A stretch of 64,000 nt of DNA. Origin: Podarcis tiliguerta. Lineage: Eukaryota. Position numbers and translations under genes: made by a program. The notes beneath the pieces are model-generated. The model did not search any database and was not told where the DNA came from. It was given only the letters and a program-made list of their open reading frames with translations. Location of the stretch: the NCBI GenBank assembly GCA_965153285.1, contig OZ229110.1, one strand, 5' to 3'. Shown here piece after piece: positions 42,132 through 63,781 of the stretch (positions within the stretch are counted from its first letter, which is position 1; each line of letters begins with the position of its first letter).

Positions 42132-43381
42132 TTACTTTATAGACCTGTCCTTGACTGCTGAATGGGTGGCTTTTAAATCAACAGATGACATGTTTACACC
42201 AACAGGTGCCAACAAAGGCATCATCCTGGTGTTTTGCCTTCCTGAATCTAATAGGAAGCTTGCACTTTTTAGTCCAAAGGGTGCCAGTTTGGGCATGGGC
42301 TTCCACTGTGTGTCAAGGTGGCCGGGTTCCATATCAGTTTTCATCTGCAGAACTGGAAGAGACACATTTGTAGTTTTTGCCATGCATGGCACATTTCCCC
42401 AGCTTCTCCCACTAGTTGTTGAAATGTTACAATTTGGGTCCTTTACTTCAGAGTCCGGCATTAGATTGAAAACACCTGATTCAGATGAAGGATCTCTCAG
42501 GTTCCTGTCACTATTAGTGAGATCGTCGTCTTCCAACTGAAGCAGGAGTGGAGTTCCAGAACCACTACTCTCTTGCACAAAACAGAGGTCCTTATAGCTC
42601 TCACCCAATTTGCCAAACTGCAAGTGAAAGCCTTCTGCTGCTGCTGCAGCTGATACCGTGCAGTTTCCCATAACTTCCAGAGAAAACTCAGTGTTTGGGG
42701 AGTTGATAAGTTTTGATCTGTCTGGGGCCGCATCATTCAGCTGCTGATTGAGGGATACAATTTCATTCAGAAGTGAGGTGAGTGTTTCATCAGTGCCATC
42801 ATTCTTTAGGTCCATTAAGTCACTTGCATCCAGTGCTGGTTCAGGTATTGCAGAGGCTACTTTTTGCAGTTCCATTTCTACCCCGGAGTCCTTGAGTTCA
42901 TTAATCTGTAGCTTCTGAAACGAAGAATCCTTTGACTTTTGTCCCTCACCTCCCTTGTATATATCTTTTAACCTAACCCGATTTCCACTTAACTCTTCAA
43001 TGAAGAGTTTAGTTGCAAATAATTCTGGGGATCCCTTCATACTGGATACATTTACTATTTGTGGGAAACAGTTTTCTTTTTCCCTAAGAAAAACTTGAGC
43101 TGTTCCAGTAGCATCCCTCTGTTTTCTGGAAGATGGTTCCGCATTTCCTTCGGACTGAAAATCAGTTGTTTCCTGCAATACTATCTGCGTGGAAGGTAAG
43201 CATTTCTGGGAATCTGTATCCAGAGTTACATAAGGTTTCTTATTTAAATCCAGGAGTAAATTTGCATTTTCTTCAGTAGCCAGTGACACTACATTTACTA
43301 TTTGTATTTCCTTTGTATTTTCTTCAGTAGCCAGTGACATCACATTTACTATCCTTGGCATCATTAAGGAGTCTTCATTTT
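42132..43381 (-). CDS. MGA-B last coding exon
   Basis: CTTACAG|AA AAT GAA...MMPRIVNVMSL...TDETLTSLLNEIVSLNQQL...WKPMPKLAPFGLK; stop TAA at 42132. Confidence 0.92.
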
Positions 43382-46300
43382 CTGTAAGTAAGCCCAAACA
43401 AAGAAAGGCCTGTTAGAATACTGGTGAGAGAGGGAATGGGATTTAAAGAGCAACTTTTGGCATTGCTAAAGCCTGGGGGGATACTTGTAAGATTCCCAAG
43501 CTTCCCCCCCCCCCGAACGTATCATGGATCTGTCAAAAAAGATCCACCCAGTTTCAAAGGGGCTTGTTAAATAGCATGTGAGGCTGCTGTTTGAAAAGTA
43601 AAAGCCCAAAAGCTTTTATTCCATCTGAAAAACAGAAATGCTAACTATAAGAGATCAACTGCAAAAAAGAACAGAAGTGTCCTATATGATGATGAACCAA
43701 AACACAAATGTGGTGTAGTGGTTAAGAGCCAGTGTGGTGTAGTGGTTAAGAGCGGTAGACTTGTAACCTGGTGAACCGGGTTCGCATCCCCGCTCCTCCA
43801 CATGCAGCTGCTGGGTGACCTTGGGCCAATCACACTTCTCTGAAGTCTCTCAGCCCCACTCACCTCACAGAGTGTTTGTTGTGGGGGAGGAAGGGAAAGG
43901 AGATTGTTAGCTGCTTTGAGACTCCTTAGAGTAGTGATAAAGCGGGATATCAAATCCAAACTCTTCTTCTTCCTCCAAGTGGCAATTCACAAGCCACAAG
44001 AGCAGTGTGCAGAGCCACCTTATAGGAATCAGTATACCGTATTTTTCGCCCTATAAGACGCACATTTCCCCCTCCAAAAATGAAGGGGAAATGTATGTGC
44101 GCCTTATGGGGCAAATGCAGGCTCCTTGGCTTCAGCGATAGCAACGCGAAGCCTCCGAAGCCTGCGCTCCGGAGGCTTTGCGTTGCTTCCGCTGAAGCCA
44201 GGAGAGTCTGCTCTTTGAGGCTGGCCGTGGGGGAAAGCAGCGCTTCCCCCCTCGCCAGCCCCAAAGGATGGGGGGCAGCAGGAAGGCGCGCAACGCCTTC
44301 CTGCTACTCTCCATCCCGGCATTGAGGCTGGTGGGGGGGAAAGCAGCGCTTCCCCCCTCGCCAGCCCCAAAGGATGGGGGGCAGCAGGAAGGCGCGCGAC
44401 GCCATCCTGCTACTCTCCAACCATCCTGTGGGCTTTTGCGGGAGATGGGGGAATTCCCCTACCTCCCACAAAAGCAGGCAAAAGCCGTGCGCTCTTTAAA
44501 GGGGCTCCGCGGCTTCCGCTGGCTTTTCTAGGAGGTGGGGGAATTCCCACCTCCTAGGGAGGGAGTCCGTCCCTTCTCCCTCCTGTGGGCTTTTGCAGGA
44601 GATGGGGGAATTCCGCCACCTCCCGCAAAAGCAGGGAGAAGGTCTTGGAGTAGCGCACAGGCTGCGTGCAGCCTGTCCGCTGCTCCCAGAGCTGCGGGGG
44701 GGAAATCATATTTTTTTCCTTGATTTCCCCCCCTGAAAACTAGGTGCGTCCTATGGGCCGGTGCGTCCAATAGGGCGAAAAATACGGTAATTCTGCCCCT
44801 CCTGTCTCTCTCCCAGCCAAGCTGTTCACTCTAAGGAGATGCCTTTCTGCACCTCCCCAGGAACAGCCAGCCGCCTGTTCTTCCTTAGTTTCCCGTGTGT
44901 AGCTCTATGCCTTTCCTTTGAGTGAAAGGCTTGGGGTAGGATGCTGTATGCCTGGCAACGTGATGGCGGCCCCAAGCTGCCTTTTATGGGATGGCTCCAC
45001 ACACTTCTGCAAGCAAAACTAGACTTTGACTGTTTATTATTAGTGTGGGGGAAGGAGCTGCTACACTCAGGTACACATCAGATCTATGCTTCCCAGAATG
45101 CCCTGGGGATTTTGGTTTCACTTTGTATAAAAATCGCCTCCTTTCTGCAGCCTACCTGTGACACTGCTTCTGTTCTTGGAACATATTAATGGTTTCGTAT
45201 GCCTGTTGGACAGGATTACCGGTTTTGTCTCTCTAGAAAGAGAAAAGGGGCTATTTTCCACTGTGGAACTAGTAGTTCTTGCTGTTTTAATGATTTCCAC
45301 CATATCTTGCTGGTTCTGGTTCTCCTGCTTTTCTAGTGCCTTCTGCTTTGTAAAAATGTATTCTAGCTTCTTCAAGATCGCTTCCTGTGACTTGCCTACA
45401 GAGAAAACAAAGAGTTGGATATCCCTCACTTTGCAATTCAAAGGAACAAAAACACACATTAGCTCAAAATACAGTATTTCATAGTGCAAGATTAGTACCA
45501 TTTACAACGCACATGGCTCGCAAGGATATAGTTAGCAAGCAGAACATCTTTAATACCATTTGCGTCTTTGAAAGTATAATCCTTCGAATCCTACATGAAC
45601 AATTCATCCCAACCACTTTGAATCATCCTAGTATTCTCCTATGCTGGAATTTCTTTCTTCATCTACATGTTTTGTTTTGTTTATTTTTTTAAGAAAACCT
45701 GTCCATGGAGTCATCTCACCTGAGAGTGCAGACACTTTACGAATCAGGGTGTTGCGCTTGCACAACAGGAACTTCTTGTGGCTTGTCAATTGGTCTGCCT
45801 GATCTCTTAGCCTCTGGATATTTTCAGTGGCCTGGAAAGGGACGAAGAGGTCATTTTTACATTCCAGAGCAATACGGGGGGGGGGGGGGGGGACAGCTTC
45901 TCTTCTCTACTCTCAAAGCATCCTAAAAACAAAGCAATGACAGAAACTTTGCAGACATGTTAGCGAATCAGCTGCATTAAAAAATTAGGGCCTTTGTGTA
46001 TATTAGGATAGCAAGTTTCAGCTGGGGACAGAGGAGACAGGGCAAAAAATGCTATTGGTGGAAATAATTATCTTGGCAATTTGCCACTACAGTTAACTGG
46101 CTAATGTACTCAGAGAAAAAAGATTAAGCCAAATGCATTTGTCCAACATGGAGCTGAGTTGCTGTGGCACATTAGAAACCCCCATAAAAAAAAAAAATTG
46201 TATCTCTCTTTTCTATATCTTTCAATTTAAGATTTTTCATCTTGCTGCTGTTAAAAATCAAGTTCTCCTCTTGATGAAGAGGCATTTCCTTCCACATCGA

Positions 46301-49300
46301 GCTAAATGATGAACCATGTACCTGCTCAAGGAGGATGCGCTTGGCAATGCTGGGAGTGCTCTGCAATCCCAAGGCCCCCTGCAGTTTTTCAAAGAGTTCT
46401 TTCATTTCCTTACGCCGACGCTGTTCATCTGCTGTGTGTTTCGGCCGATAAGAAGTCATGCTTCGTGTCCAATTCTTTGGTTCTCTTTTCCAGAGTCCAG
46501 GCGGCTGTGGACAAGAAACAGCACTTTCACCAGACAGGGGGAAAAATGCAGTGACTGGTATAAATACTTGGGATTTTATATTATCTCCCAAACCTGGGCT
46601 TCTGCATGTCTCCACAAAGCTAGCCAGATGCTGGATGGGAATGCATGAATAAGCTAAACAGCTGTTTGGTTTTGAAGGTGCAACACTGGAAAACAAAGGA
46701 GCCACACAGGCTACTGTGCAGCAGCTAGGATTCTCACTTGGGTCACCAAGGGGAATGCGGAGAATGAAGAGAGCCTGAGTACCAATCCTGTCTCATGGCA
46801 CGCGCATAAAGCAAACAATGCCCTTAAGTAATTTAAAAAACAAAAACAACCCACTACCAGTCAATGTATACTTCAGCTGGAATACACACACCGCAAAGAC
46901 ACAACAGTAGAAAAGAAATGTATATTCACTTTAGGGGACGTTGCCATCACTTTATTTGAAGAGTCATGAGCAAGATGCCTAGAAGGATTTAAAAAGAGAA
47001 GTTGTGTTTAGTTGCACAAGTCATTCTGGCTCAGATAATAGCTTAACCTCAATCAAAACTGCAAGAAAACTTTCTTTGTGCTAAAAGGATCAGGAAGTTG
47101 TGCTCTGGTCACACAGGAAATGTCCCTGCTCTGTCCCCTCCTTCTGCTGTGCCCTTCTTGCTTTCTCACTCTGCTCTGCATGCTACTCAGTCTCTTGAAG
47201 TAAACAAATGAATGAACCAAAGGTTGCCTGAAACAGCACATCTTAGGCTCTTAGGACTCTCAAAAATATAATTTGAACTAACATACAAATTAAAGATGTC
47301 CTATATAGCCCCAATAAGCTGATAATATTTGTTATTTTTTAAAATTTAATCTTTGAGTACTAACATTAGTGATTAGGAAACAGTACATCAGCCTATTTGC
47401 CCATCTAGCCCAGGACTGGTCCCAGGCTGAGGTTTTCTGATCTCTTGATTCTTTTAAGTGGAGATGGCAAGAATCTTTTTCATACCAAGCAAGTGGTCTA
47501 CCATCAAGACAAGTTACCACGGAGTAAATTTAGCCTACAAGTGTGTACATCTTTGTATAAAGTCATAGCAGGAAGGAATTCCCACATTACAAATCAAGGT
47601 GCCCAGTCTGCTGTGTAGTTGCAGTTTCTTATGAGACATTAGATTTCTTTTCTCAATCAGTGAATCCAGCCCTTCAGCTATCTGCTTGATTACTCTGGGT
47701 TGGAAGAGGAAGGGCTCTGTAGAGGGGCCAAAAAGGGCTGAATTTAAGCTGTGGTTGCAAAGCTTGACGTTCTACATTGTATCCTTGAAAAGTGGTTCAG
47801 AGGGCAGGCCACCTTTCCAGCCGAAATGGTTCCCCAGTCCCGTCCTAAAGGCTATGAGCTAAGTTAATTAAAATTAAAATTAATTCATTCTGCGAGTTTT
47901 TTCGTCTTGCGAAGCACCACTGTGTATTGACGGTTTCCCATAGGAATGCATTGGCGGGGTTTTTTAAAAAGGCGCAAGAAGTTTCGTCTTGCGAAGCAAG
48001 CCCATAGGGAAATCCGTCTTGCGAAGCAACTCAGAAAATGAAAAACTCTTTCGTCTTGCGAGGTACCACTGTATTTTATAAAGAGCTTCTGGGTGATGCA
48101 TCATTGCAAAGTCTCACTGTGTGAACCAAATAAACCACACAGCAGAGCCTTGGTCTGCATTAAAAGTAACTATATCTGCTAGACATAATAAAAAATAGCA
48201 CGATGCTAAAAATCCATTTGCTGGTGTGTCTTTGTTGTTGTTGTTGTTTAAAAAAAACTTGCTTACAACTGTCTGGGAAGTAGGGCATGAGCTGCTGTAG
48301 TTTTCAGGTGAGAAATAATACTTTTCTTTTTAAACTCTTCAGGTTCAGTATTCATTTTCTTGTCACCTTGACTGGAGTCCCTTCCATTCTGAAACAGAAC
48401 ATTAAAAAGGCAGTTAAACTCAGTCCTGCAGAGAAGCTCCAGTCAGGTAATGTTTCATTTCAAACTCAGAATGTGGTGTGTTTCTTCCTTGTGCTAGCAG
48501 AGAGGAGGCAACCAGCAAAGGCAGGTGTGTTCATGGTAAACCATTGGCTATGGTATATTGTGACATGGAAACTGGCCTATTGCTCAAACATTAATACTCA
48601 GGGTATAACTGAAGAATGGTAATAAAGACCATTGTTTTAATGTAAAGTTGCAAAAACTTGTTAAGGTGTATAATTATTTAACTTTGGTGTTCTGAAGATT
48701 AAGTAACAAATTGAGTCTTACCAATTGAGAAGTATCACCTGCAGCTTCTTCAGGACAGTTAACATGATGCTCCTTGTTGTGCATCGCTGTAATGCTATAG
48801 GTGTGGTCTAACGATACAGCATCGGGATGGAAGATGGGAGAATCACTGGATAATTGCTCTACAATTTCGGCATACTTTTTGACCATCTCTGAAGTAGTAG
48901 CACTACTCTCACATATGATACTTTCAGAATGGAAATCTGATGGATGTGCTGGCAACTTATTTTCTTTTAATTTGGTATTGTATATTGTGATTTCTGACTC
49001 TTTGGCCTCCACCGTTTTCAAATGTGGTATTTTTTCTTCCAGCTTGACAGAACTGCACTCTCCTTTCCAATTGGTATTCTTTACCTGGAGGGATACAACA
49101 TGATGGACAGTGGAGTTTGGAACGTTTTTCAGCTCTGGAAACTGAACTACTGTAGTTAGCCTAATACCACAAAACAAAACTCATCTATGGCATTTGTCAA
49201 GACTCCATACACTCCAATTTCTGACTGAGTCATGAAAATATTTACACACTTTTTAACCAAAGAGGAAGTTAAATTCTCAACAACAAAATTTTTGCAAGAA

Positions 49301-52300
49301 GTTCAAATTCTGTGAGGAAAGCAAGTCTGGGTGGTAAAACTGGAGAAATTAGTATAAAGAGAAGTTAAGGAAAGGCAAACAGTAGAAATTTTACGCACAC
49401 ACCTTGGACCCAAAGATCCAAGGCAAGTGACGGCAGTAATCTCAATTGGTCACAGTGGTTCGCAAATAAATTGTGTTATAGTAAAAACATTTTGCTGCCA
49501 GATCTGTTTTACAAATTAAAGCAGTGTGGGATGCTCACCAGTGTTTCAGTCTGGTGGTCAGAACTCCCATCAATATCTTCCTCTGCAGAATCATCTGTTT
49601 TTTCACCATTTCCTATATCATCCTTGGTGATACCAAATGACATAGGACCATTTTTCCAATAGTTGGTTTTAGATGCATTTTTTCCTAAGCATTTAGCAAC
49701 TGGATTCTGGGATGATTTGCTCCAAGTTCTGTTGGGCTCAGCAAGGTCATCCTTAAAAGCTTGATTCTCTCCCCGTAAACCAGAAAGACCTTTTTTATAG
49801 CAAGAAACATTACAGTTCTCCTGAACATTAGCACTACTGTTAGGAAGATATTCTTGGGCACTATCCACACACTTCTTTCCTGGTGTGTAATTCTGGTCCC
49901 TTGTGCAGCAGATCTCAAGCTCTCCTCTCTCTGTTTCCTTGACATTTTCTATTTGCATGGAGTCACCCCTCTCTTTCCAGTGCCTCCTTAGCAGTTCAAA
50001 GTCATGTTGATTTTGCTGCCGACTCTGAAGCAATTTGGCCCTTTTCTGCTGCTGCTTTTCGGTATGGCTCATGCTTATAATCCGCTGCAGTTTACCAAAC
50101 AACGTTGGCTGTGTCTGCTTAGGTCCTTCCGAATCAGTCATGGGCCTTTGCATTTGGGCAGTGTGTGTTTGCTCCCCATTTGAACATTTCATATGCGGAG
50201 CCTCTTCCTGACGTGTGGGGCTTTTCTGCAATGTATCACACACAGGAACGTCAGTTTGCAAACCATCTTCAGCCTCATCTGACATACCTTCAAGGTACCT
50301 CCCATGCTGCTTCTCACTGCTCACAGTCACTTTAACTGTCTTACTTGGCTTCCTGCAAACATATGAATGGTCTGCCAATATCGCGTCTGATGGAATGTCA
50401 GGATGCAATAAAGGTTCCCCACTTAATAATTCTCCCCCTGCATCCACGTCGTCTGGAACAGTCTTTGTAGCAGTTGCACTTTTGTCAGGAATAAACATGT
50501 CCCCTTCTTCCTTCACCCGCAATGGCAAATCCGTAACAGCTTGGTCTGGCTCTGCACTACAGACTGCTGAAGGAAAGATAACAAGCAGCTTTAATGCTCT
50601 AATCAATGGAATAGCAGCGAGAAGAACCGAAGCAAATCCTGTGCTGTTCATTTTACCTCTAGTAAATAATAAACTAGGCAAAAGCGGGGAAAGGAGCAAC
50701 AAGTAGGAGCGAAGGTGACATCACAAGACTCCAATTGATATCAAAGTGGGGGAAAGCAAGAGCTTTGAAATTTAGCGCAACAAAGGAGACACTGAAAGTG
50801 GCATTCTTTTTGAAATCATTCCATTACCCATCCTCAGTCATGAGTGGTGTTTGTTTTGTAGCCCATGAGGGAAGGGAGGGATCCGTGTGCTTAGGGGTTC
50901 CCTGAAGTATGCAGATGCCAAAAAAACTGAAGGGAAAAAATGAAAGGTGTTTTAAAGGCTTCGTAAGGACTGTGAATGTGCACAGCACACGAAGAAGAAT
51001 AAAATATCAAAACAATCTTAAAACATCCTTCTACATACATCAAGGTCATGAGAAGTAAAACACGCATGGCTCCATCGCCCACTCAATTACCTTGGGATGC
51101 CTCTAACTGCTCAGGCCATTTCCTACTTTATCACTGTTTCCTTAGCAACCAGGCCTTCAACAGGGTTGTCGACATTCCCGTCCCTATCTGTTCCTTGGAA
51201 ACTTTCAAGGAGATGCCGGATTTCACTCAAAACAGACATAGCAAAACACCCTGAGTGACCATCTGTGGCACTTTCAGGGTCAGATAGGAAAGGAATGCAG
51301 CGTAGGAGTCATAAAAGACAGGAAAACCAAATCAAGCCTAATACATTCTAGCCAAAGGTTCAAGACAATCAGTATTGGAATTTTTATTTTTTTTAAGAAA
51401 GGACACCCTGATGTAATTCTTACATCAGCACCATTGCCATTCTAAGAGAACAAGGGAGGTGCTCATGGCGAGTTCGGGCGCCTCTTTTCCCATAAAAATA
51501 GCACTGTAAATAGGCCCTTGTGTTGCAGGTCCAGCATATATATATATATATGGATGGATAAGCCCATCGCAAAGAGTAACATGACAATTGTACGTGCATC
51601 CTTTCATGTGGGAGACAGGGGAGGAAAGACTGAAACATGCAATAAGCGGCAGTACCCTCAGTGGTGAAAAGCATCCTAAACGGAGCAAGAGAAAAGGTAG
51701 GGGAAATCCATGCCACAGAGATGGATGGGAGGGCAGAGTGGATGAAATTTGTAGGATGACTGGGTGCTCACCCATGGGAGGAAGCCAGGAGTGTAAGGGT
51801 TCAGCACTAAAGGGTGCCAGTACGGCAGATGTTGGAGGAACAGTCCTCTAATTCACTGCTGATCACAGAAACTTAAAAGGCAGGCATGGCACCTTCTCTG
51901 TCCCTCCACCCTCATCTAAGACTAAAAAAAGAAGACGTAGCGAGTGACATTTAGAAATCCATGACTCCCCTAGCAAGGATATTCTGAACACACATGTAAA
52001 ACAGAAATGGAACCATATCACTGAAATAACGTCAGGTCACCACACCAGCCTGGTTCACACATCATGGTAAACCAAACCATGGCTTAGAATGAACGTGTGA
52101 GTGCTCCAAAAGCAGCTTATTTATCCCCAACCTAAGATAGTCCATACACACATAAATTTGGTAAAAAAAACCCCAACCAGCAACAAAGCACACAAACACA
52201 CAGGGTGTGACGGGACGAAAAAAGCACATAAAAGGGGGAGGGGAGTCAAAAGAAATAATAATAAGATGTTTTACCAGAGAAACAATGGCAACATTTTGTT

Positions 52301-55300
52301 GCAGTTTCCATTTATATTTGATAACAGTAAGTGAAGATTTAACACACCTGGATAGTCCAGAATGTTTATTCAGCAAACTCTCAGAAAAAAAGGTTTTGAA
52401 AATGTTTTGAACGCTTTTCTAGTAAGACTTACATTCATCGTTGCTTCTCATCTGTTTATTAACATGCTCCAGTTTCCAATCCCTTTTTCCGTTGCAGCAT
52501 TCAATAATTTCACATAAATATTTTTTCAAGCTTTTCTTGTGCACAGAAACTCCCTTTAACAGGGCCACCCTTTTCTTCAGACAATCAAATGTGCAATCTG
52601 TCTTGCAGGAAAGTGTAGGCTGGCACATCCCAGAAGCTAAACTAGCACAGACACACCCAAGCTGGCAGGTGCCACTGTGTGCTGGATCTTGGCTGCTGGT
52701 TATCTTACAGGTAGGCTTGCTTTTGAGTGAAGGCTGAAAGAATATACAAATATGTATCTCAAGAACCTACAAGAACCTACAAACAACAGATTTTGAACAA
52801 ACGTAAGGTATAAGATCAATTACACAACACTTTATGATACATAATTTATACCTTGTCCTCAACTGGATGGTATAAAAATGCACAAAAGATGAAGGGAAAC
52901 AGGATTGTACCCCGTGTGTAACAGAAAGTGAAAACTAACATCCAATAGCCTTTTAAAACACAGAACATGGAAGCATTAATGTTCAAGATTATCAGGGGGG
53001 GGAAGCGGACTGTTCTGTGCAATTTTCATTTGTTTCTTCTGTTCTTAATACTGTTTAGAGTCTGATCACAGAAGTTCTTCTAAGCAGGCTAAAAGCAAGC
53101 CAATTTGATCATCATTCTGCAAGCAGCAGTCTTGCTTAGGGTTCCACAAGGGTCATTCACTAGACTGTTGGTTCAGAATTGCAAAGAAGTCTTGCGAGAC
53201 TCGCCAGACACTTTTTGTTGAATAAAATGGATTTGTCTTGTGCATGGGAACATTAGAATCCTACCTCCCCCCAGCAATGGTCTTTTATAGGACATTAACG
53301 CAAATAAAGTGTAATTATAAGAAGAGCGTGCTGCAGCAGGCCAACAGCCCATCTAGTCCAGCTTCCTATTCTCACAGTGGCCAACAAGATGCCCGTGAAA
53401 AAATGTGCAAGCAGGAGCCAAGTACAAGAGCATTCTTTCCCATCTGTGGTTTCCAGCAACTGGTGCTCAGAAGCATTACTGTACAGTCATGCCTCGGGTT
53501 ACAGATGCTTCAGGTTGCATTTTTTCGGGTTACGGATCCGCCGAAACCCAGAAGTACCAGAAAGGGTTACTTTCGGGTTTCGGTGGCCATGTATATGTAG
53601 AAGCGCTAAATCACGCTTTGCGCATGCGCAGAAATGCCAAATTGCAACCCGTGCGTGCACAGACACGGCACTGCAGGTTGCAAACGCTGCGGGTTGCGAA
53701 CGTGCCTCCCGCACAGATTGTTCGCAACCCAAGCATCCACTGTACTGCCTCCACAGCTGTGGAGACAAAGCACAGCTATCATGGCGAGAAGGCAATGACA
53801 GCCTTTTCCTCCGTGAGAGTTACAAAGGAAGGCAAAGGACGCGGCCATTTCAACTTACCTGAGGGCTAAGCAGAGATGCTAGAGATAGGTCTGCTCGCTC
53901 TTTGGTAATGCAAGTCCGTGGCTTCCCATTCTGCAATGCACGACCTTCCAATTCCATTAACTCCACCGGAACCTGCTTATAAATGAATTAATGTCACCAC
54001 AATTTTACCTGAATCTGAGCACAGAGTATCAACTCTCTGTATATATATATTGCACATAGTGATATTTGGTCCTGCTCCTACTCAGACTAAACCTTTTGAA
54101 ATTCATGGACATTACTAACTTAGGTTCGTATATTTCAATGGGTCTACTGTGAGCCAGACGTCACCTGAATACAAGCCTAAATTGGTTTAGAAATGTGAAA
54201 ACAAATCCCAGAAGTTACAGGTCACACACCGTGAACTTATGAATAATTCTAATGCATGAAGACAATAGAGGTTCCTTTCTTTTCTTACGCTAATCTTACT
54301 CTGCCAGTTACATTGCATGTGAAACAGAATTAAGAAATCCTAATGGCCCATTTGAATTTTGCAGATGATCTGCAAGGACATGGTGGTGAAATAAAAATGG
54401 ACATGTTTTGCCTTGTAATTTCTGAATGTAACTTCTTTACTATGCAGCAGATATGTATACTGAGTTATGTATTTCTCTTTGTTTTTCATGCTTTTTCCAA
54501 AAACCAATGACATATACCTTCCCCACCTCCTGCAAAATAGTCAAAAAAGGATTGCAAAAGAAAAATGACTTGTGAGTGCGTGGGTCCATTTCTAGCATAT
54601 GCATATCTAACCAACGACTAAATGGTAAAGATTATTGAAGCTTACCTGAGAGACGATCAAAGTATCCAGAGAAAGGTCTGCCCATTCTTCAGTAATACAG
54701 GTTTGTGGCTTCCCATCCCTCAAAGCACAATCCTCCAGCTCCATCAGTTTCATCTGAGATAAATGCAGTGGTGGACAGCTACTCTGTTTTGGCTGCTGTG
54801 CTTGACGCACAGTTATTTGCTTTCTCTGTATGTTTCCATCTAATTCTGGCACATGAACATCGTCATCCACTTGGCTATATGATCTAGACCTATTGATGTT
54901 CTCTAAGGCAGAGAAATCATGCTCCTGCTTTGCCAGAACAGGTAAAGGCACTGTAAACTTTTTGGAAGATTTTACCCTGCCTCGAAAAGTTGTTTGTTTA
55001 TTCTTAGTTTTTCTTCTCCTTCTAAAAACGGAAGGCAGAGAAAGAGGCTTGAAAGCATAAGTGCTGGATGGAGTAATGATGGGTTTCTTCTCTGGAACTT
55101 TATTGAGGGCTTGAGCACAGCTGGTACCTTTGGACGGAATCCGGCAATCCATGGGATAACTAAACAAGCTTGAAGAGAATCCCGCACTTTCCATTAGCTT
55201 CCCTTCCCTTTCCAAATATTTGTCCAGTTTATCGCTGCAGAAGGCAGATCGGTTCTTCAGTGAGTCCTCTAAAATGCTACCTGAATTAATCCAGAAAATG

Positions 55301-58300
55301 ACATAGAGAAAGAAGTCAAGCACAACCTCTGAAAATACATCAATCCCAGTTCCGGCAGAAAAGGAAACTCACAAAAGTTTATCTAAAAATTCTCAAAAGA
55401 TCTCCTTTTCTGCAGCATCACGAAGGGAAAATATATACAAAATCAATGCCCTACCTTCCTGCTTAGAAGTGTTGTTAAGTCTTCCTTGCCAGCCTTTTAT
55501 CTTTCTAAAATCATTGGTTTTCCCAGTCTTGGAAATGAAGGAAAGGGCGGTATCTAGAAATGAAGGTAGCAAAGCAAGTTTATTAACGAGGCACAATATT
55601 CCTATCTATAAACAACGGTATATATATTCAACTAAAAACTAATTATCACATGCATTTGCTGTAAGGGGTACTCAACAAGTGACAAGGGCCAGAGTAATAG
55701 CGAAGTTAATTCACCAAAAATTCCTTCTAGAAAATAATAACTAAAATAAGAACAGTCACGTCCTTCATTCCCAGAGGGCTCTACAGTTGCACATACTATA
55801 GAGAGCACTCCATTTTCCTCCAGAGATGAACCTTAGCCTTCTTCCCAAACTTGGATCTAGAGAAAGGGGAGACAGGAGTTTCCCTACAGCTGCCTAGCAC
55901 TTCGGAACACGGCTGTATGAAGCCCAGTACAGCTGCAAGTACGATCTCTCTCAAGCTTTAAGGTTGGGAAGAAATCTGGGGGTTGTTTTGGTGTTCCACC
56001 TCCACAGCACTCCAAACACCTCAAAAATATGGTGGCAAAATGTATGTACCCCCCACAAAGTCTCATCTGAACAGTCAGACCTAACAATGCACAATTTACA
56101 TAATTTATAGCTTTGTTCTATACTGTTTGCATCGTGCGGTGATAATGTAATTTACTAAGACAATGGTTGTACATAGAAAATACAATGAATGGGTTTTTTA
56201 AAAAAGTTTGCAAACCAACAAGCCCCAGCCTTGCTTTCTGGAGTTGGGAGTGCTGAGACTGCTGTCTGCCATGAAGTTTCAAGCTCCAGTCTTCCTCTCC
56301 AGCAGGAACTAGAAAGGGGGACACAGACTGCCCTCTCCATTGCTTCCAAGACTCTCTGAAATGCAACTGTGCGGACAACATATCCTGCCATCTCCCTGTC
56401 CCAAGCTGGAGAAGAGGGCCAGAATATTCCCACAGGCTGGAACTCAGATGGAGAGCATGGGTTGTGCCTGACCTCGTTCTGTGATGCAGCATAAGGTCAG
56501 AAGTGAAACCCCATGACTTGTGAAGTGAAACTCTCATAATATCTGGCTGGCCAACAAAGGGCAGCCGGGTCTTATGGACTCTGCTTACCATTCTAACATT
56601 TCAAAAAGATACATTATATTTACCTTGACAACTGAGATCTGTCACTTGGTTTTCCCCAAATACATAATCCTTTGAAGGTCTCAGGGGAAGCTGCACACCC
56701 AAATATTTCAGGTCAATGCTAAGTGTTGGGTCCACGGAAACCAACTTCAGCCCCACTAGAAGAAGAATACCCATGTTAGAGATCTTTAAAAGCATGAAGA
56801 AAGGCAGGGTGGCCAGTGGTTGCCAAACTAGCACACATGAAAGTCTTTGCGGGCAGGCCTCCCAAACTGAGCTTTCGTAAATGTCTCTAGCCCTCTTAAA
56901 AAGAAAGGTATAAAACAAAACGTGTACTCTTCTAAGTAATTCATTTGAAATGAGTCACCATGGCTCCTCCTACCTCTCAGTGTTTTTGGCCAAGGAGCAA
57001 GTCAGAGCTGTGATTGATAAGTGAGTTGTTTAGACACCAGGCAGCAGGAATCCATGGGTCCTAAAGAGTTGCTGTTTCACTTCCTATACACAGTCGTACC
57101 TTGGTACTTGAACACCTTGGTACTCGGACGTTTTGGCTCCTGAACGCCGCAAACCCGGAAATGAGTGTTCCGGTTTGTGAACATTTTTCGGAAGCCGAAC
57201 ATCCAACGCGGCTTCCAATTGAGTGCAGGAAGCTCCTGCAGCCAATCGGAAGCCGCACCTTGGTTTTCGAACCATTTCAGGAGTCGAACGGACTCCTAGA
57301 ACAGATTAAGTTCAACAACCAAGGTATGACTGTAGTGTAGTTTTCCTGCTCCCGTCTTATTTTCTAATGAAATATCCTTAGTTTGTCTTTTGTTTTAACC
57401 TAGCAACAAGGATGCACCTTTCTTATAGGGTGTTTGTCTGATTCTGTAGACCCTAGGAGTTATTTTCTGCAAATACTACAGCAAATAAGAGTGGGTAGAC
57501 ATTAAATATCCCTACTTCCTCGAAAAGGCAAATGTGAAAACTTCACAAAGAGGTTGAGGTCTGCTGTACAGGAACTAAAAACCTGACATTCATTAAGAAT
57601 TTGCTGAATAGTTAACTTAAAGCACAATGGTATTTAAGCCTACTCAGAAGTAAGTTTCTGTGTTTACTGGAGCTTACTCTTGGGTAAGTGGGTTCACTGA
57701 TAGCAGCCTAGGCTTTGATTTAGGCTTGGCATTTGAGAAAAACATGGTTCTTGTGATGGGCAGAAATTCAGGTAAAGCCTTTTCTAGTATGGAAATGCAA
57801 TTATTATAAGAGCTTCACTGCGCCAGTACTCTCCAGTTTGGGTTGTGTCATGCTCCCCACATCAGCCATTTCATGACTGGTGCCCCCAGCACTCTCAAAA
57901 TTCGAAATGTGCTACTAGTTTAAAAAGGTTGGCGACCTCTGAGAGAATCTATAAGCCACCAACTCCCTCAAGCACAGGTGAAGGGCTCTAATACGAATGT
58001 GGGCAGCATTCATTAATACAGTGGTACCTTGGTTTACGAACCTAATCCGTTCTGGAAGTCCGTTCTTAAACCAAAGCATTCTTAAACCAAGACATGCTTT
58101 CCCATAGCAGTGGGGGGCTCAATTTACAAATGGAACACACTCAACAGGAAGCGGGTCATGTTCTGCTTCCAAGGCAAAGTTCACAAACCAAAACACCACT
58201 TCCCGGTTTGCAGCATTCTTAATCCAAGTTGTTCATAAACTAAGCTGTTCTTAAACCAAGGTACCACTGTACAATGCATCAAAGTTTAGCTGAATAGACC

Positions 58301-61300
58301 ACAGAGAACACACATGAGAAACAATATCTGAATACTATGTTCTAAGGGCGATATCAAACTAAACCGTTCTGTACAGCTCAGTCACTTCTGGCTGTACAGT
58401 GGAACTCCCCTCTCCCCTCTCTGTATTCCCCTGAAATCGGTTATGGTTCTCCCTCAACCCTTCAGAACATTTTGTTTGGGGTGGCATGAAGAGAGGAGAG
58501 GGACGAGAAGTTATGTTGCACGGCCAAAACTGTGCTAGCCGAACTGTTTTGTTAGATGCTGCTCTAGATAACTATCACAGCAGCTGCGGAATCTATTGCT
58601 GATAACATACCTTCTTGAAGACTAGGATGTATCACTTGTCTGTGCCTGAACGACTTCAAATCTTCTAAGAGCTTTGTTTCCAGAAGTTGTAGGTTTATTT
58701 GAGAGTCTGTCATAGAACAAAAAAGTATTATTGACACATACAAATACAAAAAAAGTGTATCACATTCTAACATACAAATGGTAAGAATGTGATACACTTT
58801 AAAAAAACAAAAAACCTACTGTTTGCTTAGCAGTCTTAATTTCTCCTGCACTAAGGCGGCCCCATCAGTGTCAAGAGTACCTGAATCATATGTAGTCAGG
58901 AAGGAAGCTTCTCCATTCTGTAGTCCTTCTCTTCCCCCAATTTTATCAAGTCTGTGTTTATCAAGAACTTCCTGTACATAAAGAGGGACTACAATAAGTG
59001 TTAAATGCTTAAGCAAAAGTGGCCTAGACACCCTACCAAGAGTCAAATTAATCTTAACAAGATTTAATACATACTAGAGCTGAATAAAATGGTCTGGATT
59101 TTAAATTCTGCATGATCACATACAAAAGGCAAGGTCACAAGTACATAAAAAGAACACCCTGCTGATTCGACCAGCGGCCTATCTTGTCTAGTGTGCTGGA
59201 TGCCTATGAAAAGCCCAAATGCACACTTCCCCTGATATTGGAGTTAATATATAAGTCATTAACATCGCCTTCTCCTCCACAAATTCACCCTTTTAAAGCC
59301 ATCCACACTGACAGCCATCACTTCATCTTGTAACAGAAAATTCCATTGTTTTTACTATGTACTGAATGAAAAAGTATTTCCTTTTGTCTGCCTTGAATCT
59401 TCCCACATTGAGCATCATTGGATTGCTCTGGGTTCTAAGTATTCTGAGAGGGAGAAAGAAGTCTGCCTGTCCACTTCTCCACACTATAATTTTTACACAC
59501 ACCCATCACATCCCTTCTTAACCCATGTTTTTACTAGACTAAAAGCCCCAAATGTTGTAACTTATCAGTGAGCTGCCACAGTCCCCACTTTGGTTGCCCT
59601 TTCCCAACTCTGTAGCATCCTTCTTGAGGTGCGAACACAACCGTACACAGAACTCTCCAAATACGGTTGCATCACAGGTTTATAGAAAAGGATTATGGCA
59701 CTGACAATTTTATTTTTTATTCCTTTCCTGATGATACCCAACATGGTCTAGACACTCACATTCAGAGCTATTGAAACTGAAGAGCGTGAGCGTCAAAGCA
59801 TAGAGGTCCCGCCACCCCAAACCTGCAATTTTCACAATTAAAAAAAGAAATGCACATTTAGCTTTCAATCTGTCTAGTATAAACTATGCTAGACAATATT
59901 AAATTTAAATGAAAGATTTACCTTTGATGCAAAGGATGCAAAGAGGACTCCATCTATATCCTCGTAATCAAGCACGAGCTCTGGCTTGGCAAAATCTGGT
60001 CCCACATTGCTTGTCATAGCAGACTTTGCTGTGAATTTCAGGGATGGTTCAGTCTCAATCACTTTACGTGGTCTTCCTCTTTTAGGTGGACCAAACAACA
60101 CATAATCTGCTTTCTTATCAAGACCCCTTCCCAACACAGCCTTCTTGACTACATTTTTCTCTTTTCTTCCATGAATAAATTTGGTTGACGTAGGGGGCAA
60201 GAGGTTGAAACTCATTGCTTTTTTTGTTACCATATGGCTGCTGTATGTTTCAGTATTTATCCATTGCGCATCTTTGCCCAAATAACATTTCTCTGTGTTA
60301 TTGCTTCTGAAATGAAGTTCTTTATGTTTTGCTTCCACAACTTTAAGCGGGCTAGCTAGTTTGTTATTTTCAAAACAGACAGGCAAAGAATTTACTGAAT
60401 GATTATTCAAAGAAGACTTCTGTGTCTTATAAGAAGACAAAAGAGCTTCAAGAACAGAGATGGTCATATTCTTGGTGGTACCACAGCACTTTAAGGAGGC
60501 ATCAGGCACTGTCCCACTACCCAATTTTAAAGTTTTGTCTTTGGCAACGCTCTGTGGTTGCTTGTGGGATTCAAGGTCCACTTCTCTTCTTCCTATTTCA
60601 TCACAGTTTTTCTCCAACTGTGTCTCTGAAATCTTGTTTCTATCTCTACAGAAATATTTTTCTGTTGCTTTATCAGTGCCTTCCCGGTTCATGAGTATCC
60701 TCTCTGTATGTACCCTTGGCCCATAAACATAGTAATCTACAGGCTTATCTTTAATGGATATACGGATATCATCATTTGAGTTCAGCTGTGATTTCACACG
60801 GGAATCCCTTTCACAAGCTGTTGGACTGGAGAAAGGAAAACAAAAACTAGATCAATGTAATTGCAGAAATTAAATAATATCCTAATAAATTTATTTTGTC
60901 CAGTTTATCATGCATTTGTATAAAAATTATGTATCTGTTATTGCTAAGTAATGCAAAACCCTAATGGCTGTGCAGTTTATATATAGCTTTAGCAGCTTCC
61001 ATTACTAGTGTGAAAGTAAATCAGCCTTCCTTTATCCATCAATCAATACATACATCATTCAGGTTATCTGTGATACCATATATATTTTCTAAAGCAATAC
61101 ATTTGCTGGATGAAGAGTTTGGATTTGATATCCTGCTTTATCACTATCCTAAGGAGTCTCAAAGCGGCTAACAATCTCCTTTTCCCCTCCTCCCCCACAA
61201 CAAACACTCTGTGAGATGAGCGAGGCTGAGAGACTTCATAGAAATGTGACTAGCCCAAGGTCACCCAGCAGCTGCATGTGGAGGAGCGGGGACACGAACC

Positions 61301-63781
61301 CAGTTCAACAGATTACAAGTCCACCGCTCTTAACCATTACACCACACTGGCTCTCTGGATGCTATAGTCTCTCTGGATGCTATAAACTCAAACCAAGTTT
61401 TATTTTAGTGTCACAAAATTATTTCCTTCTGTATTCCCATCTTCTTTTGGTTGATTTGGAAGTACCGTAAGTTCCAATGAGACCTTCTCCCAATTAAGCA
61501 TGCATAGAATTTTGGCCTCATGTACCTACCTGGAAATAATTACTTTTAAATAAGTATGCATAGAATGGGACTGACTGCCAGCTTTAGTTTAGAATTTACA
61601 GTGGTACCTCAGGTTACAGACGCTTCAGGTTACAGACTCCACTAACCCAGAAATATTACCTCGGGTTAAGAACTTTGCTTCAGGATGAGAACAGAAATCG
61701 TGCGGTGGCGGTGCAGCGGCAGCCGGAGGCCCCATTAGCTAAAGTGGTACCTCAGGTTAAGAACAGTTTCAGTTTAAGAACAGACCTCCGGAACAAATTA
61801 AGTTCTTAACCCGAGGTACCACTGTATTTATTTAAATCAGAGATGGGGAACTTTTTTGATCCCACAGGTCAGATTTTGACCTGGCCACACCCTGTGGATC
61901 AATTTTGACATATGGGCAGGACAACCTACCTGTCAATCTCAGGACACTTGTATGATGCCACATGATTGATAGGTGGGTCATCCTGCCCACCTGTCAAAAT
62001 CACTTACACTGGGTTCCGAAGCGCCCAACAGTCAGCTGGGAACTGACTCCAATTCTGCATGCTATCGGCAGTGATAACAGATACAAATAGCATCAAAGGA
62101 ATGACATAAGCACACTTAGCACTAAGTGAGTCAGAAAGCGGTGCAGGGAGGCCAGGGCACTCACTGGTGGGGAAGATCTCATCTGCAGGCTTAATATGGC
62201 CCAAAACACATCTCCAAAATACCCAACCAAGCCATTTCTAATAAATTTCACCCATCCATCAAACGGCATCATGTGACATCTTCTATCAACCATTTTGAAC
62301 TGCCTACCACATGCCACAGCTTTCCTTGGGATCGCCATAAAAATTATGTATTCTACATACAGTTCCCACAACACTAAGAGCAGCAAAGATTACCAACATG
62401 GGGCTGGAATGGTTACAACATTTTGGGTGTTTAAGTGTAGGGAAAACGTAGGGGACACACACACACACACACACACAAGATAAAAGCCTATAAAATTTTG
62501 CATGGTTTGGGGCTATCCAATGAAACTGAATATAGAATGGCCCCAAACCATTTAGGACACAGCACATAGTTAAACTATGAAATTTGTTACCATGAAGTGT
62601 AGCAATGGCCACCAACTTGCATGGCTTTAAGAGGATTAGACAAATACATAGAGGACAAGTTTATCAATGGCTACCAGCAATGATCGCTGTGTTCTACGTC
62701 CACCATCACAGGCAGTAAGCCTCCAATTACCAGTTGATGGGAATCACTCATCCCCAATAATGATAGATATGTAACTGTACCATTCAGACGCATCACATTT
62801 TGTGTCTGGAGTAAATGTTTCTTTCTCCAAAGAAGTTTTATACATCTTCCAAGCATTACATGAAGCATCTAGGTCTCTTTGCTTTGGATCCAAAACATCA
62901 CCTTCAGTGAGACACCTGTAACTGCTTGTAAAGTTAGAAACTCTACGTCTTTTCTGCTCTGGGCAATCATTTTGCATTGCCTTATGTTCAGGTCTGCTGC
63001 TCAGACCAGCTTTCTTGAACCCTTTGAGAAATGGGTTGTAGTCTATTTTCAGTTGTGTCATTTGTATGTTTTGATAGGCAGTCACAGCAAAGAACTCTGT
63101 CTGTGGGAAAATGAAGGTATGGACATCAGGACCATTTAGCTGAATAACCTCTGTGACTCTGTCAGCAAGCACCAAGTGTAGCCGAGGTAGATAGCGGTGC
63201 ATAGAGTGCAGAATGATATGCCCTTCCTGGTCCAAGGTATTGTTAGTAAGTTTGAGTTTGTAGAAGGAGACTGGTTGGTGCATCCAGTAACGGCCAGTAG
63301 AAGGTGATTCGGGGTGAATGAATACTCTTCCCAGCACATGGGGTTCTGCTTTCCCACTGGGCTCCCAACTATGGCCATTCCATTTATAGCGTAAGTTGTC
63401 AACTGGAGAAATATCCATGACCAAGATATACTTCAGCTTGGAGTCTAAGCCTGTTATCCAGTATCGACAGTATGGAAACATCCGCCTTCCCTGCTTAGTC
63501 AGAATCATTTCTGTGCCGCGATAGTAGAACTCATTCCACATATTGTTGTTGTCCAAGGTAACAGTAATGCTTCCTGAGGTGCAATCTGCTGGAAGGCAGG
63601 TCTTCACTTTCGATTTTACTGGTGCTGCAAGGCCATTGTCCTCTTGATTTGAAACGAAGTGTCCTTGGTCAGCTTTTCCAGTGATCTGCGGCTGTTTCAT
63701 GAGAACGTAAAGAGCAGGCACTTTACCCAACGCCTTTCCACCATCCTCATTCCCAAAGGCCATTGGTTGCTTCTTCATCAT
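42132..63781 (-). CDS. MGA copy B, remodelled MGA-like paralog (~2258 aa, spliced)
   Basis: 17 coding exons traced, all GT-AG and phase-compatible, totalling 6777 nt with no internal stop. Retains T-box, AT-hook, degenerate Cys-rich region, bHLH-ZIP and C-terminus. Confidence 0.88.
43709..43973 (+). mobile_element. Squam3-type tRNA-derived SINE
   Basis: TGGTGTAGTGGTTAAGAGC A box (duplicated), GGTTCGCATCC B box and (CTT)n tail; matches the inverted copy at 61112-61355. Confidence 0.88.
44037..44786. mobile_element. Non-autonomous Tc1/mariner-type DNA transposon
   Basis: TIR CCGTATTTTTCGCCCTAT...ATAGGGCGAAAAATACGG, TA on both sides; GC-rich interior with a ~105-bp internal repeat. Confidence 0.9.
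45156..45395 (-). CDS. MGA-B exon 22 homolog
   Basis: GKSQEAILKKLEYIFTKQ...KPLICSK; 240 nt, the same as A. Confidence 0.9.
45720..45831 (-). CDS. MGA-B exon 21 homolog (helix 2/zipper)
   Basis: ATENIQRLRDQADQLTSHKKFLLCKRNTLIRKVSALSG; 112 nt, GT-AG. Confidence 0.91.
46322..46504 (-). CDS. MGA-B exon 20 homolog (bHLH basic region/helix 1)
   Basis: YRPKHTADEQRRRKEMKELFEKLQGALGL; CCACAG|CCG ... CAG|GTACAT. Confidence 0.9.
46930..46978 (-). CDS. MGA-B exon 19 homolog
   Basis: CCTTCTAG|G HLAHDSSNKVMATSPK|GTGAAT; phase 2 to 0; resembles A's NSVHDHSSQKTPK. Confidence 0.75.
47890..48071. mobile_element. Partial pogo/Tigger-like MITE
   Basis: Repeated CGTCTTGCGAAGC subterminal motifs ending in GAGGTACCACTG|TA; left end not evident. 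Confidence 0.65.
48267..48388 (-). CDS. MGA-B exon 18 homolog
   Basis: NGRDSSQGDKKMNTEPEEFKKKSIISHLKTTAAHALLPRQ; TTTCAG|AAT ... TT|GTAAGC (phase 2, as in A). Confidence 0.86.
48722..49141 (-). CDS. MGA-B novel exon derived from the middle of ancestral exon 17
   Basis: 420-nt open phase 0-0 segment FPELKNVPNSTVHHVVSLQ...SLDHTY..., homologous to A ~9460-9800. Donor TTG|GTAAGA; the choice among clustered AG acceptors is uncertain. Confidence 0.7.
49539..50566 (-). CDS. MGA-B fused exon (5' of exon 10 + 3' part of exon 17)
   Basis: Begins SVCSAEPDQAVTDLPLRVKEEGDM (A exon 10: TICGTEPEKPVKNFPLWVKVDGEM) and ends EKTDDSAEE...ETL|GTGAGC (A exon 17 end); phase 1 to 0. Confidence 0.87.
52433..52733 (-). 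CDS. MGA-B exon 9 homolog (degenerate Cys-rich region)
   Basis: PSLKSKP...TCQLGCVCASLA...DCTFDCLKKRVALLK; GT-AG, phase 0 to 1. Confidence 0.88.
53316..53812 (-). mobile_element. CR1-type LINE 3' fragment interrupted by a MITE
   Basis: ATAAGAAGAGCGTGCTG...CCCATCTAGTCCAGC...CAGTGGCCAAC typical of an antisense CR1 3' end; resumes after 53744. Confidence 0.6.
53484..53742. mobile_element. pogo/Tigger-like MITE (same family as 5784-6014, opposite orientation)
   Basis: TA|CAGTCATGCCTCGGGTT...AACCCAAGCATCCACTG|TA. Confidence 0.82.
53859..53972 (-). CDS. MGA-B novel exon 8b (duplicate of exon 8 3' end)
   Basis: AAGCAG|VPVELMELEGRALQNGKPRTCITKERADLSLASLLSPQ|GTAAGT; 114 nt, phase 0-0. Confidence 0.78.
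54646..55280 (-). CDS. MGA-B exon 8 homolog
   Basis: GSILEDSLKNRSAFCSDKLDKYLEREGKLME...DGKPQTCITEEWADLSL; GT-AG. Confidence 0.92.
55455..55553 (-). CDS. MGA-B exon 7 homolog
   Basis: TALSFISKTGKTNDFRKIKGWQGRL; 99 nt. Confidence 0.91.
56624..56755 (-). CDS. MGA-B exon 6 homolog
   Basis: VGLKLVSVDPTLSIDLKYLGVQLPL; 132 nt. Confidence 0.92.
57091..57332. mobile_element. pogo/Tigger-like MITE
   Basis: CAGTCGTACCTTGGT...ACCAAGGTATGACTG|TA termini. Confidence 0.8.
58019..58269. mobile_element. pogo/Tigger-like MITE
   Basis: Perfect TIR CAGTGGTACCTTGGTTTA/TAAACCAAGGTACCACTG with TA on both sides. Confidence 0.9.
58611..58706 (-). CDS. MGA-B exon 5 homolog
   Basis: LETKLLEDLKSFRHRQVIHPSLQE; 96 nt, GT-AG. 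Confidence 0.9.
58881..58971 (-). CDS. MGA-B exon 4 homolog
   Basis: EVLDKHRLDKIGGREGLQNGEASFLTTYDS; 91 nt, phase 0 to 1. Confidence 0.85.
59150..59740 (-). mobile_element. Old CR1-like LINE fragment
   Basis: Decayed antisense CR1 motifs (CAGCCATCACTTCATC...GTATTTCCTTTTGTCTG...TGGTTGCCCTTT). Confidence 0.6.
59922..60825 (-). CDS. MGA-B exon 3 homolog (AT-hook)
   Basis: CPTACERDSRVKSQL...PPKRGRPRK...YEDIDGVLFASFASK|GTAAAT. Confidence 0.91.
61112..61355 (-). mobile_element. Squam3-type SINE, full length
   Basis: Reverse complement of the 43709 element from GAGAGCCAGTGTGG to its tail; possible CTGGATG target-site duplication. Confidence 0.88.
61599..61824. mobile_element. pogo/Tigger-like MITE
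   Basis: TA|CAGTGGTACCTCAGGTTA...TAACCCGAGGTACCACTG|TA. Confidence 0.88.
62545..62748 (+). mobile_element. CR1-like LINE 3' fragment
   Basis: CACAGCACATAGTTAAACTATG...GGATTAGACAAATACATAGAGG resembles a CR1 3' region. Confidence 0.55.
62781..63781 (-). CDS. MGA-B exon 2, coding part (T-box domain)
   Basis: MMKKQPMAFGNEDGG...complete T-box...NPFLKGFKK; donor TG|GTACAG (phase 2, as in A); likely acceptor at 63852. Confidence 0.94.

Follow-up and report, generated by a model that had tools for sequence, protein, structure and literature searches.

Two MGA-type genes in the window

The DNA considered here is a 64,000-nucleotide stretch of contig OZ229110.1 from the lizard Podarcis tiliguerta (GenBank assembly GCA_965153285.1), which we refer to as the window. 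It contains two T-box first coding exons of the MGA type, both on the minus strand and placed head to tail. Copy A is MGA proper; copy B is an MGA-like gene in which near-identity to copy A breaks off inside the T-box helix that enters the minor groove of DNA. MGA serves as the DNA-targeting scaffold of a Polycomb complex by which germline and meiotic genes are silenced. A distance of 32 kb separates the two T-box exons, some 10 kb lies between the end of copy B and the ATG of copy A, and the copy A gene extends past the start of the window (Table 1).

The reading frame, splice sites and bHLH of copy B are intact. The 2232-residue MGA-like protein annotated in P. raffonei is collinear with the exons of copy B at 89-98% identity (tblastn, in which small exons align poorly) and combines an N-terminal T-box with a bHLH towards the C-terminus in a single polypeptide. 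Exons of the window were searched singly, and whole-protein comparisons used annotated database proteins. The Pfam scan of copy B covered eight exon open reading frames (ORFs), leaving out the small exons 45157-45396 and 48266-48388 that flank the HLH exon. Exon 1 matches the T-box family (PF00907) with 242.3 bits (the cut-off is 26); the match spans all 182 profile positions (1-182) and residues 74-257, and the corresponding score for copy A is 252.6 bits. The T-box of copy B aligns to the structures of TBX5, TBX3, TBX1, TBX21 and brachyury, with E = 2e-63 for TBX5. The HLH at 46172-46705 scores 21.1 bits, the cut-off being 20.7. The donor of the first coding exon, TG/GTACAG (the slash marks the exon boundary), has the same position and phase as that of copy A, AG/GTAGGC. 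The ORF of exon 1 comprises 345 codons (62744-63781) and runs through this donor into intron 1, where it stops at 62744; the 344-residue P. muralis entry A0A670HR00 in UniProt is therefore a read-through model and not a real product.

Independent sequence data agree with the window. DNA contigs (Logan) of run X1, which carries another organism label, match the helix region without difference, and the helix codons of copy B are also present in RNA contigs of runs X15 and X19. A spliced joint, 62781/60825, occurs in RNA runs X15, X16 and X19, which derive from three studies; it skips 1955 bases and is not seen in DNA run X1. The three RNA runs cover exons only, with a contig of 4.8 kb across the joint in X19. 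This exon-only coverage and the GT..AG joint in three RNA runs establish that copy B is transcribed and spliced. Contigs break at 63060-63089, inside the near-identical tract described below. Those over 63060-63610 are assigned to copy A because their differences from copy B fall mainly at sites that distinguish A from B (10 of 10 in X1, six of nine in X19).

A homogenised tract and its 3′ edge

Aligned base by base, copies A and B share a run of about 700 nearly identical bases with abrupt ends. When the half of the window carrying copy A is compared with that carrying copy B using blastn, the T-box exon is 88.7% identical and the other exons 66-75%. The edges of the tract were placed by fitting a single change point by maximum likelihood to a codon-aware alignment. 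The 5′ edge falls at 63719/63718. The 3′ edge falls at 63029/63028, between the codons for Phe251 and Leu252, with a support interval of 6 bp (63034-63029, two log-likelihood (lnL) units). Mismatch rises from 3.3% before this point to 34% after it, with a likelihood ratio of 145.8 in favour of a change point. The initial annotation of this DNA had near-identity ending exactly at the DNA-recognition helix. The change point bears this out, lying where the C-terminal minor-groove helix has its first non-Phe residue.

Codons 22-251 hold 13 synonymous and about ten replacement differences, and differences become dense from codon 252. Synonymous divergence between the copies (dS) is 0.089 over the 230 codons of the tract; the 5′ and 3′ flanks reach 0.99 and 0.64, respectively. 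Since the value in the tract is so far below those of its flanks, the similarity reflects recent shared ancestry, that is conversion, and not constraint on the protein. The ratio of replacement to synonymous divergence (dN/dS) in the tract is approximately 0.2, a sign of purifying selection, with 10.3 replacement (Nd) and 12.7 synonymous (Sd) differences on N/S = 539/151 sites. The replacements are mostly on the B side, yet they remain below the neutral expectation.

The codon alignment also agrees with the changes first noted in the helix: Ala (GCT) in copy A is Leu (CTC) in copy B, with all three bases different, and Arg-Asp (AGG GAT) has become Lys-Lys (AAG AAA), so that the residue after position 256, acidic in A, is basic in B (D/E to K at 257). 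The canonical A-K-G-F-R of the T-box helix thus reads L-K-G-F-K. Aligned to TBX5 residues 230-237, L252-K256 of copy B pair with A233-R237, and the equivalence of the altered arginine to TBX5 R237 proposed in the initial annotation is correct. R237 is a Holt-Oram site, and brachyury has leucine (L218) at the arginine position, a detail looked for in the brachyury paper and not found there. The R237W substitution reduces DNA binding by TBX5 3.8- to 10.5-fold (PMC12132455). Insertion of the helix Phe residues into the minor groove, likewise claimed at the outset, is documented for F213 and F217 in the final helix of brachyury (PMC11828899), to which F251 and F255 correspond by motif position alone. 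Both are present in copy B of the window and in all 11 annotated B orthologues.

Two observations concern the helix and the residues just behind it. In RNA run X19 a T to A difference at 63011 changes codon 257 from AAA to AAT (K257N), whilst X15, with the same organism label, and DNA run X1 keep the letter of the window; Lys257 may be polymorphic in a Podarcis. At 62950-62962 (B residues 274-280) lacertid B proteins carry a basic cluster, PEQKRRRV, in place of SDQEGGSV in A, and this looks like a nuclear-localisation-type motif.

Table 1. Positions of exons, tracts and helices of the two MGA-type genes, numbered from the first base of the window
Feature	Position	Strand	Remarks
Copy A (MGA proper), first coding exon	30788..31839	-	ATG of MENRP at 31839 to donor AG/GT
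Copy A, T-box open frame	30784-31956	-	second T-box exon; carries NPFAKGFRD
Copy A, tract matching that of copy B	31078..31779	-	12 bp longer owing to SSIA codons
Copy A, helix NPFAKGFRD	31060..31086	-	AAC CCA TTT GCT AAA GGG TTC AGG GAT
Copy B (MGA-like), coding span	42135..63781	-	about 2230 residues; from the mapped P. raffonei B protein
Copy B, first coding exon	62781..63781	-	N-terminus, T-box and linker; ATG at 63781; donor TG/GTACAG, last base 62781
Copy B, intron 1	60826..62780	-	1955 bp, GT..AG; high-copy repeats at about 61050-61885
Copy B, homogenised tract	63029..63718	-	codons 22-251, 690 bp; mismatch to A 3.3%; dS 0.089, dN 0.019
Copy B, helix NPFLKGFKK	63011..63037	-	codons 249-257; AAC CCA TTT CTC AAA GGG TTC AAG AAA
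Copy B, helix residue L252	63028-63026	-	from codon reading
Copy B, helix residue K256	63016-63014	-	from codon reading
Copy B, helix residue K257	63013-63011	-	from codon reading

Copy B across squamates

A search of 1.8 billion representative proteins with the copy B exon returned a 2236-residue protein at 96% identity and other long MGA-like proteins with odd helices. Cluster look-up gave non-canonical helices in the MGA-like proteins of P. muralis, P. raffonei, P. lilfordi and Elgaria multicarinata and in a protein of Gekko kuhli; the MGA-like protein of Hemicordylus capensis found in this way has the canonical helix and is the A of that species. The whole-length P. muralis protein as query added B-type proteins of Lacerta agilis (88%), Zootoca vivipara (85%), Hemicordylus capensis, Euleptes europaea, Gekko japonicus and Heteronotia binoei. 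The annotated B orthologues number 11, with lengths of 1650-2400 residues (three from Podarcis, two from Gekko and one each from Lacerta, Zootoca, Hemicordylus, Elgaria, Euleptes and Heteronotia). They span lacertids, a cordylid, an anguid and geckos, under the NCBI name 'MAX gene-associated protein-like', and each for which a contig is recorded shares it with the 3100-3300-residue MGA of its own species. No B-type protein of a snake, iguanian, skink or varanid is among the best 120 hits to the P. muralis B query, which is not proof of absence. A literature search found no published description of the lizard MGA-like gene, which is known from automatic annotation.

How old is the duplication? 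A tree of the 700 residues that follow the helix, built by a quick method with tuatara left out, recovers B as one clade (100) and squamate A as another (100), both inside a turtle, alligator and bird outgroup. Copy B therein belongs to a paralogue clade sister to squamate MGA and is not the vertebrate MGA orthologue. On this phylogeny it appears to be an old, squamate-specific tandem paralogue of MGA that arose in stem squamates. It has lost about 1000 central residues and kept the N-terminal T-box and the bHLH-zipper.

Upstream of the helix the grouping differs. A tree of the region from the N-terminus to NPF pairs B with the A of its own lineage in Euleptes (96/91), Hemicordylus (100/97), Elgaria (99/94) and lacertids (100/99), and requires five A/B label changes. 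Forcing B to be monophyletic here costs 139.8 lnL, with p = 1.3e-8 in the approximately unbiased (AU) test. In the T-box tree the B branches are several times longer than the A branches. Some residues are common to both copies in just one lineage: FYYRG in Podarcis, a two-residue deletion with LEA in Elgaria and S.GIA.NAGV in Euleptes; A and B of Hemicordylus share a long N-terminal signature. The grouping of B by lineage upstream and as one clade downstream points to a single stem-squamate duplication followed by independent conversions. To judge from these trees and shared residues, lacertids (which show later patches within Podarcis), Hemicordylus, Elgaria and Euleptes each appear to have undergone conversion independently; the same is probable for other geckos.

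The outline of the converted region is similar throughout. In seven lineage pairs B is 94-97% identical to its own A over the T-box, 50-67% over six helix residues and 33-49% over the next 70 residues. The 3′ edge lies at codons 252-257 in every lineage, within the last nine codons of the T-box, whereas the 5′ edge moves by tens of codons; identity of the N-terminus to own A ranges from 38% to 88%. B-only substitutions occur up to 15 codons before the helix (NIEITQLKTNY in Hemicordylus, KTDY in Lacerta, KINY in P. lilfordi, IQMTQ in Podarcis). Lacertids show mosaic states at residues 122 (V/M), 205 (P/L) and 41-42 (DL/HF), which suggest that small conversion patches are still being exchanged. 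At residue 122 (31418 in A, 63418 in B) lacertid A has Val where other MGA has Met; B has Met in the window, P. raffonei, P. lilfordi and Lacerta, and Val in P. muralis and Zootoca.

All 19 A-type sequences compared, from squamates, turtle, alligator and bird, have NPFAKGFR followed by D or E. The description of NPFAKGFR as almost invariant therefore holds for tetrapod MGA; it fails for the T-box family, from which fish proteins depart. The motif is NPF(A/S/T/V)KGLKE in acanthomorph 'MGA a' and NPFAMAFRK or NPFTLAFRV in otophysan MGA; Tbx6/VegT-like proteins of fish replace the Ala by T, M, V, S or F and the Arg by K. The helix of B reads NPFLKGFKK in Podarcis and Lacerta, NPFLKGFEK in Zootoca, NPFVKGFRK in Hemicordylus and Elgaria, NPFAKGFVK in Euleptes, NPFAKGFLK in G. 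japonicus, NPFTKGFVK in Heteronotia and NPFTKSFVK in G. kuhli. FLKGF, whose fixation in B the initial annotation proposed to check, is thus general in lacertids (FLKGFKK, with FLKGFEK in Zootoca) and not B-wide. The refuting condition set there, FAKGFR in B orthologues, does not hold in lacertids. The A-type ending occurs in no B orthologue of any squamate lineage examined, despite independent conversions.

Among the B orthologues position 252 is A, T, V or L and position 256 is R, K, E, V or L. Lys257 is the only helix change common to all 11. No alignment column in the first 256 lacks a residue shared between some B and some A; column 257 is the first to do so, followed by several in the linker. 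K253 is retained in all B, G254 in all but one, and both Phe in all; K253, G254 and F255 lie 3′ of the converted tract. We argue that the helix of B still works, because both Phe, K253 and mostly G254 have been kept outside the converted tract. The three-base difference between GCT and CTC at codon 252 would have arisen stepwise, from Ala through Val to Leu (GCT, GTx, CTC). It is less likely that Ala252 was changed by one multi-nucleotide mutation following a conversion that reached codon 255, given the Val intermediate in Hemicordylus and Elgaria B and the dense mismatches from codon 256.

Radical changes at conserved T-box positions were also seen in Podarcis B proteins, near residues 99 and 143 (about 63485 and 63353). 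GRRMFP is GKRMFP in P. muralis and P. lilfordi, and SGKAEP is SWKAEP in P. raffonei, P. lilfordi and the UniProt model of P. muralis. Copy B of the window has neither.

What do the helix changes imply for DNA binding? Copy B keeps the T-box scaffold, and constraint on its helix appears to be loosened or altered at the equivalent of TBX5 R237 and at neighbouring positions. The initial annotation proposed a retained scaffold with altered affinity or specificity. The scaffold and both Phe are indeed kept, but one new specificity is not indicated since positions 252 and 256 vary; this variation suggests relaxed or shifting constraint. Most likely the changes alter DNA affinity, in a way that probably varies with lineage, rather than creating one fixed new specificity. 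In MGA, contact with DNA is also made by the bHLH-zipper with MAX and by way of E2F6 and L3MBTL2 (PMC5806899). We infer that, having these other routes to DNA, MGA may tolerate change in its T-box helix better.

What fixes the edge, and comparison with known systems

The account that we consider probable, if far from assured, is recurrent conversion of B by A, with an edge held mainly mechanically by an old drop in homology and possibly also by selection for Lys257. The first coding exon of copy B would have been overwritten repeatedly by non-allelic gene conversion from the copy A exon 32 kb away. The helix residues other than the two Phe would have diverged early in B and never been restored: D257K first, common to all B, with R256 later replaced by K, E, V or L (an order obtained by parsimony from the helix states), and A252 changing to V and then L. 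Together with the fast-diverging linker, these early changes would create a permanent drop in homology, at which heteroduplex formation and mismatch-tolerant conversion are blocked and the edge is pinned. That this drop is the main cause of the pinning we hold with moderate confidence.

Several features fit a mechanical edge. Homology falls after the helix, to 33-49% amino acid identity, in every lineage; B-only substitutions gather within 15 codons upstream of the helix; residues 252 and 256 vary, and K257N is seen in X19. The shifting 5′ edge, too, agrees with a mechanical limit, given the range of N-terminal identity to own A. Other features weigh against this account. A mechanical edge leaves the constancy of Lys257 unexplained in a protein whose linker tree spans about two substitutions per site and in which 252 and 256 vary, and this constancy hints that Lys257 is under constraint. 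Homology does not vanish at once, because ten identical bases (AAAGGGTTCA) come after codon 252. Conversion outside lacertids is read from protein trees and shared residues, not from dS. In addition, the B proteins of Euleptes and G. japonicus have Ala252, so that this codon was either sometimes converted there or never changed.

The initial annotation suggested that selection may have kept conversion off the helix. In such a case the helix of B would have an advantageous new DNA-binding property, and tracts overwriting it would arise only to be removed by selection. This is possible, though we regard it as rather doubtful; the collapse of homology at the edge would stop conversion mechanically and is an equally good account. 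An island protected by selection would explain why the 3′ edge varies by no more than six codons across lineages when the 5′ edge shifts by tens of them, why the first B-diagnostic residue, K257, is present in 11 of 11 annotated B, and why the edge lies inside a domain, at residues that never vary in tetrapod MGA. A study of GOT1 paralogues treats islands of divergence that persist despite conversion as a recognised signature of selection for new function (PMC3728101). Such protection accords less well with the variation at 252 and 256 among B orthologues, with K257N in one Podarcis RNA data set and with the toleration of similar changes in teleost MGA, and the linker behind the helix is diverged enough from A to stop conversion without selection. 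Mechanical pinning and active protection are not mutually exclusive. A bolder proposal is that squamates possess a second PRC1.6-type scaffold, whose helix was re-tuned when the paralogue originated, D257K coming first and then freeing R256, and has been shielded by selection for more than 150 million years, so that A and B would read different T-box sites on one refreshed scaffold; this is speculative and on present evidence unlikely.

Could copy B instead be a functionless passenger, with a T-box kept intact only by repair from A and a helix decaying beyond the reach of conversion? The radical T-box changes in some Podarcis B (GKRMFP, SWKAEP), the replacement of R256 by E, V or L in some lineages and the long B branches of the T-box tree are what such a gene might show. 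We nevertheless find this improbable: both Phe, K253 and, in all but one B, G254 have been kept through squamate history outside the converted tract, replacements within the tract are fewer than neutral, and the gene is intact and expressed. Purifying selection alone, without any conversion, might be supposed to make the two T-boxes alike, the edge being simply the end of a conserved domain, given that no part of MGA is better conserved than the T-box and that the Pfam domain ends near the edge. The low tract dS between strongly diverged flanks, the lineage-specific residues and deletion that B shares with its own A, and the rejection of B monophyly upstream of the helix when it holds downstream make this very unlikely indeed. 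Finally, the chance that the helix of copy B reflects misassembly, or a mutation private to the sequenced animal, is negligible. No positive sign of error was found, and although runs of more than 31 bases identical between A and B in the tract could mislead assemblers, as the contig breaks at 63060-63089 illustrate, the same helix codons occur in independent DNA and RNA contigs and NPFLKGFKK is found in annotated proteins from four other lacertid assemblies (P. muralis, P. raffonei, P. lilfordi and Lacerta agilis).

Some other features of the locus were recorded. Intron 1 of copy B contains high-copy interspersed repeats at 61050-61885, where contig word depths reach thousands to a million in all four runs, RNA runs included, and a (CA)n microsatellite at 62455-62478. 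Between the end of copy B and the first coding exon of copy A, the stretch 34000-36000 is GC-rich (0.59) and is probably the CpG-island promoter of MGA.

The locus bears on the limits of gene conversion between paralogues, in that a 3′ edge recurs after independent events in several families while the 5′ edge wanders. It also supplies a natural series of helices (AKGFRD, AKGFV/LK, VKGFRK, LKGFKK, LKGFEK) on a near-identical T-box, including the Holt-Oram position. Should the helix prove neutral, the locus would remain a documented case of concerted evolution, affecting a transcription-factor domain across an order-level radiation.

The closest known relative is MGA itself, the T-box/bHLH-zipper scaffold of non-canonical PRC1.6 and the tandem neighbour of copy B. 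Both have the N-terminal T-box in one large first coding exon, a bHLH near the C-terminus and the same exon phases. Unlike MGA, the copy B clade is confined to squamates, is some 900-1500 residues shorter and has a fast-evolving linker. Precomputed Pfam lists give PF16059 (DUF4801) for all A-type proteins and give neither PF16059 nor PF00010 for any B orthologue, and the helix of B ends x-K-G-F-x-K in place of A-K-G-F-R-D/E.

In teleost MGA a and the Tbx6/VegT-like proteins of fish, as in B, the Ala (to S, T, V, M or F) and the Arg (to K) of NPFAKGFR are replaced whilst NPF and the T-box are kept. These fish proteins differ from B in that their second Phe has become Leu (KGLKE), a change seen in no squamate B, and in the acidic last residue where all B have Lys. 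Among teleost MGA a, the KGLKE form, with the second groove Phe replaced by Leu and Arg by Lys, was noted in P0158, P0165, P0170, P0178 and others. In teleost MGA a, the same helix has loosened in parallel, following a separate MGA duplication. With respect to TBX5 R237, the Lys at position 256 is a conservative replacement, unlike the disease alleles; Val or Leu in geckos and Glu in Zootoca are not.

Islands of divergence between converting paralogues are familiar from RHD/RHCE, the primate red and green opsins and the globins. A further example is the pair of GOT1 paralogues of Tigriopus, where an island of divergence lies amid conversion (PMC3728101). Like these systems, the squamate pair has a tract of low dS beside old divergence, trees of its parts that disagree, and an unconverted part with residues of likely functional importance. 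It differs from them in that the same edge recurs through independent conversions in several families within an order-level radiation, in that the island starts inside a DNA-contact helix, and in that selection is here only a candidate cause. The case is a new example of a known phenomenon, a recurrent-conversion edge at the anciently diverged helix of a squamate MGA paralogue.

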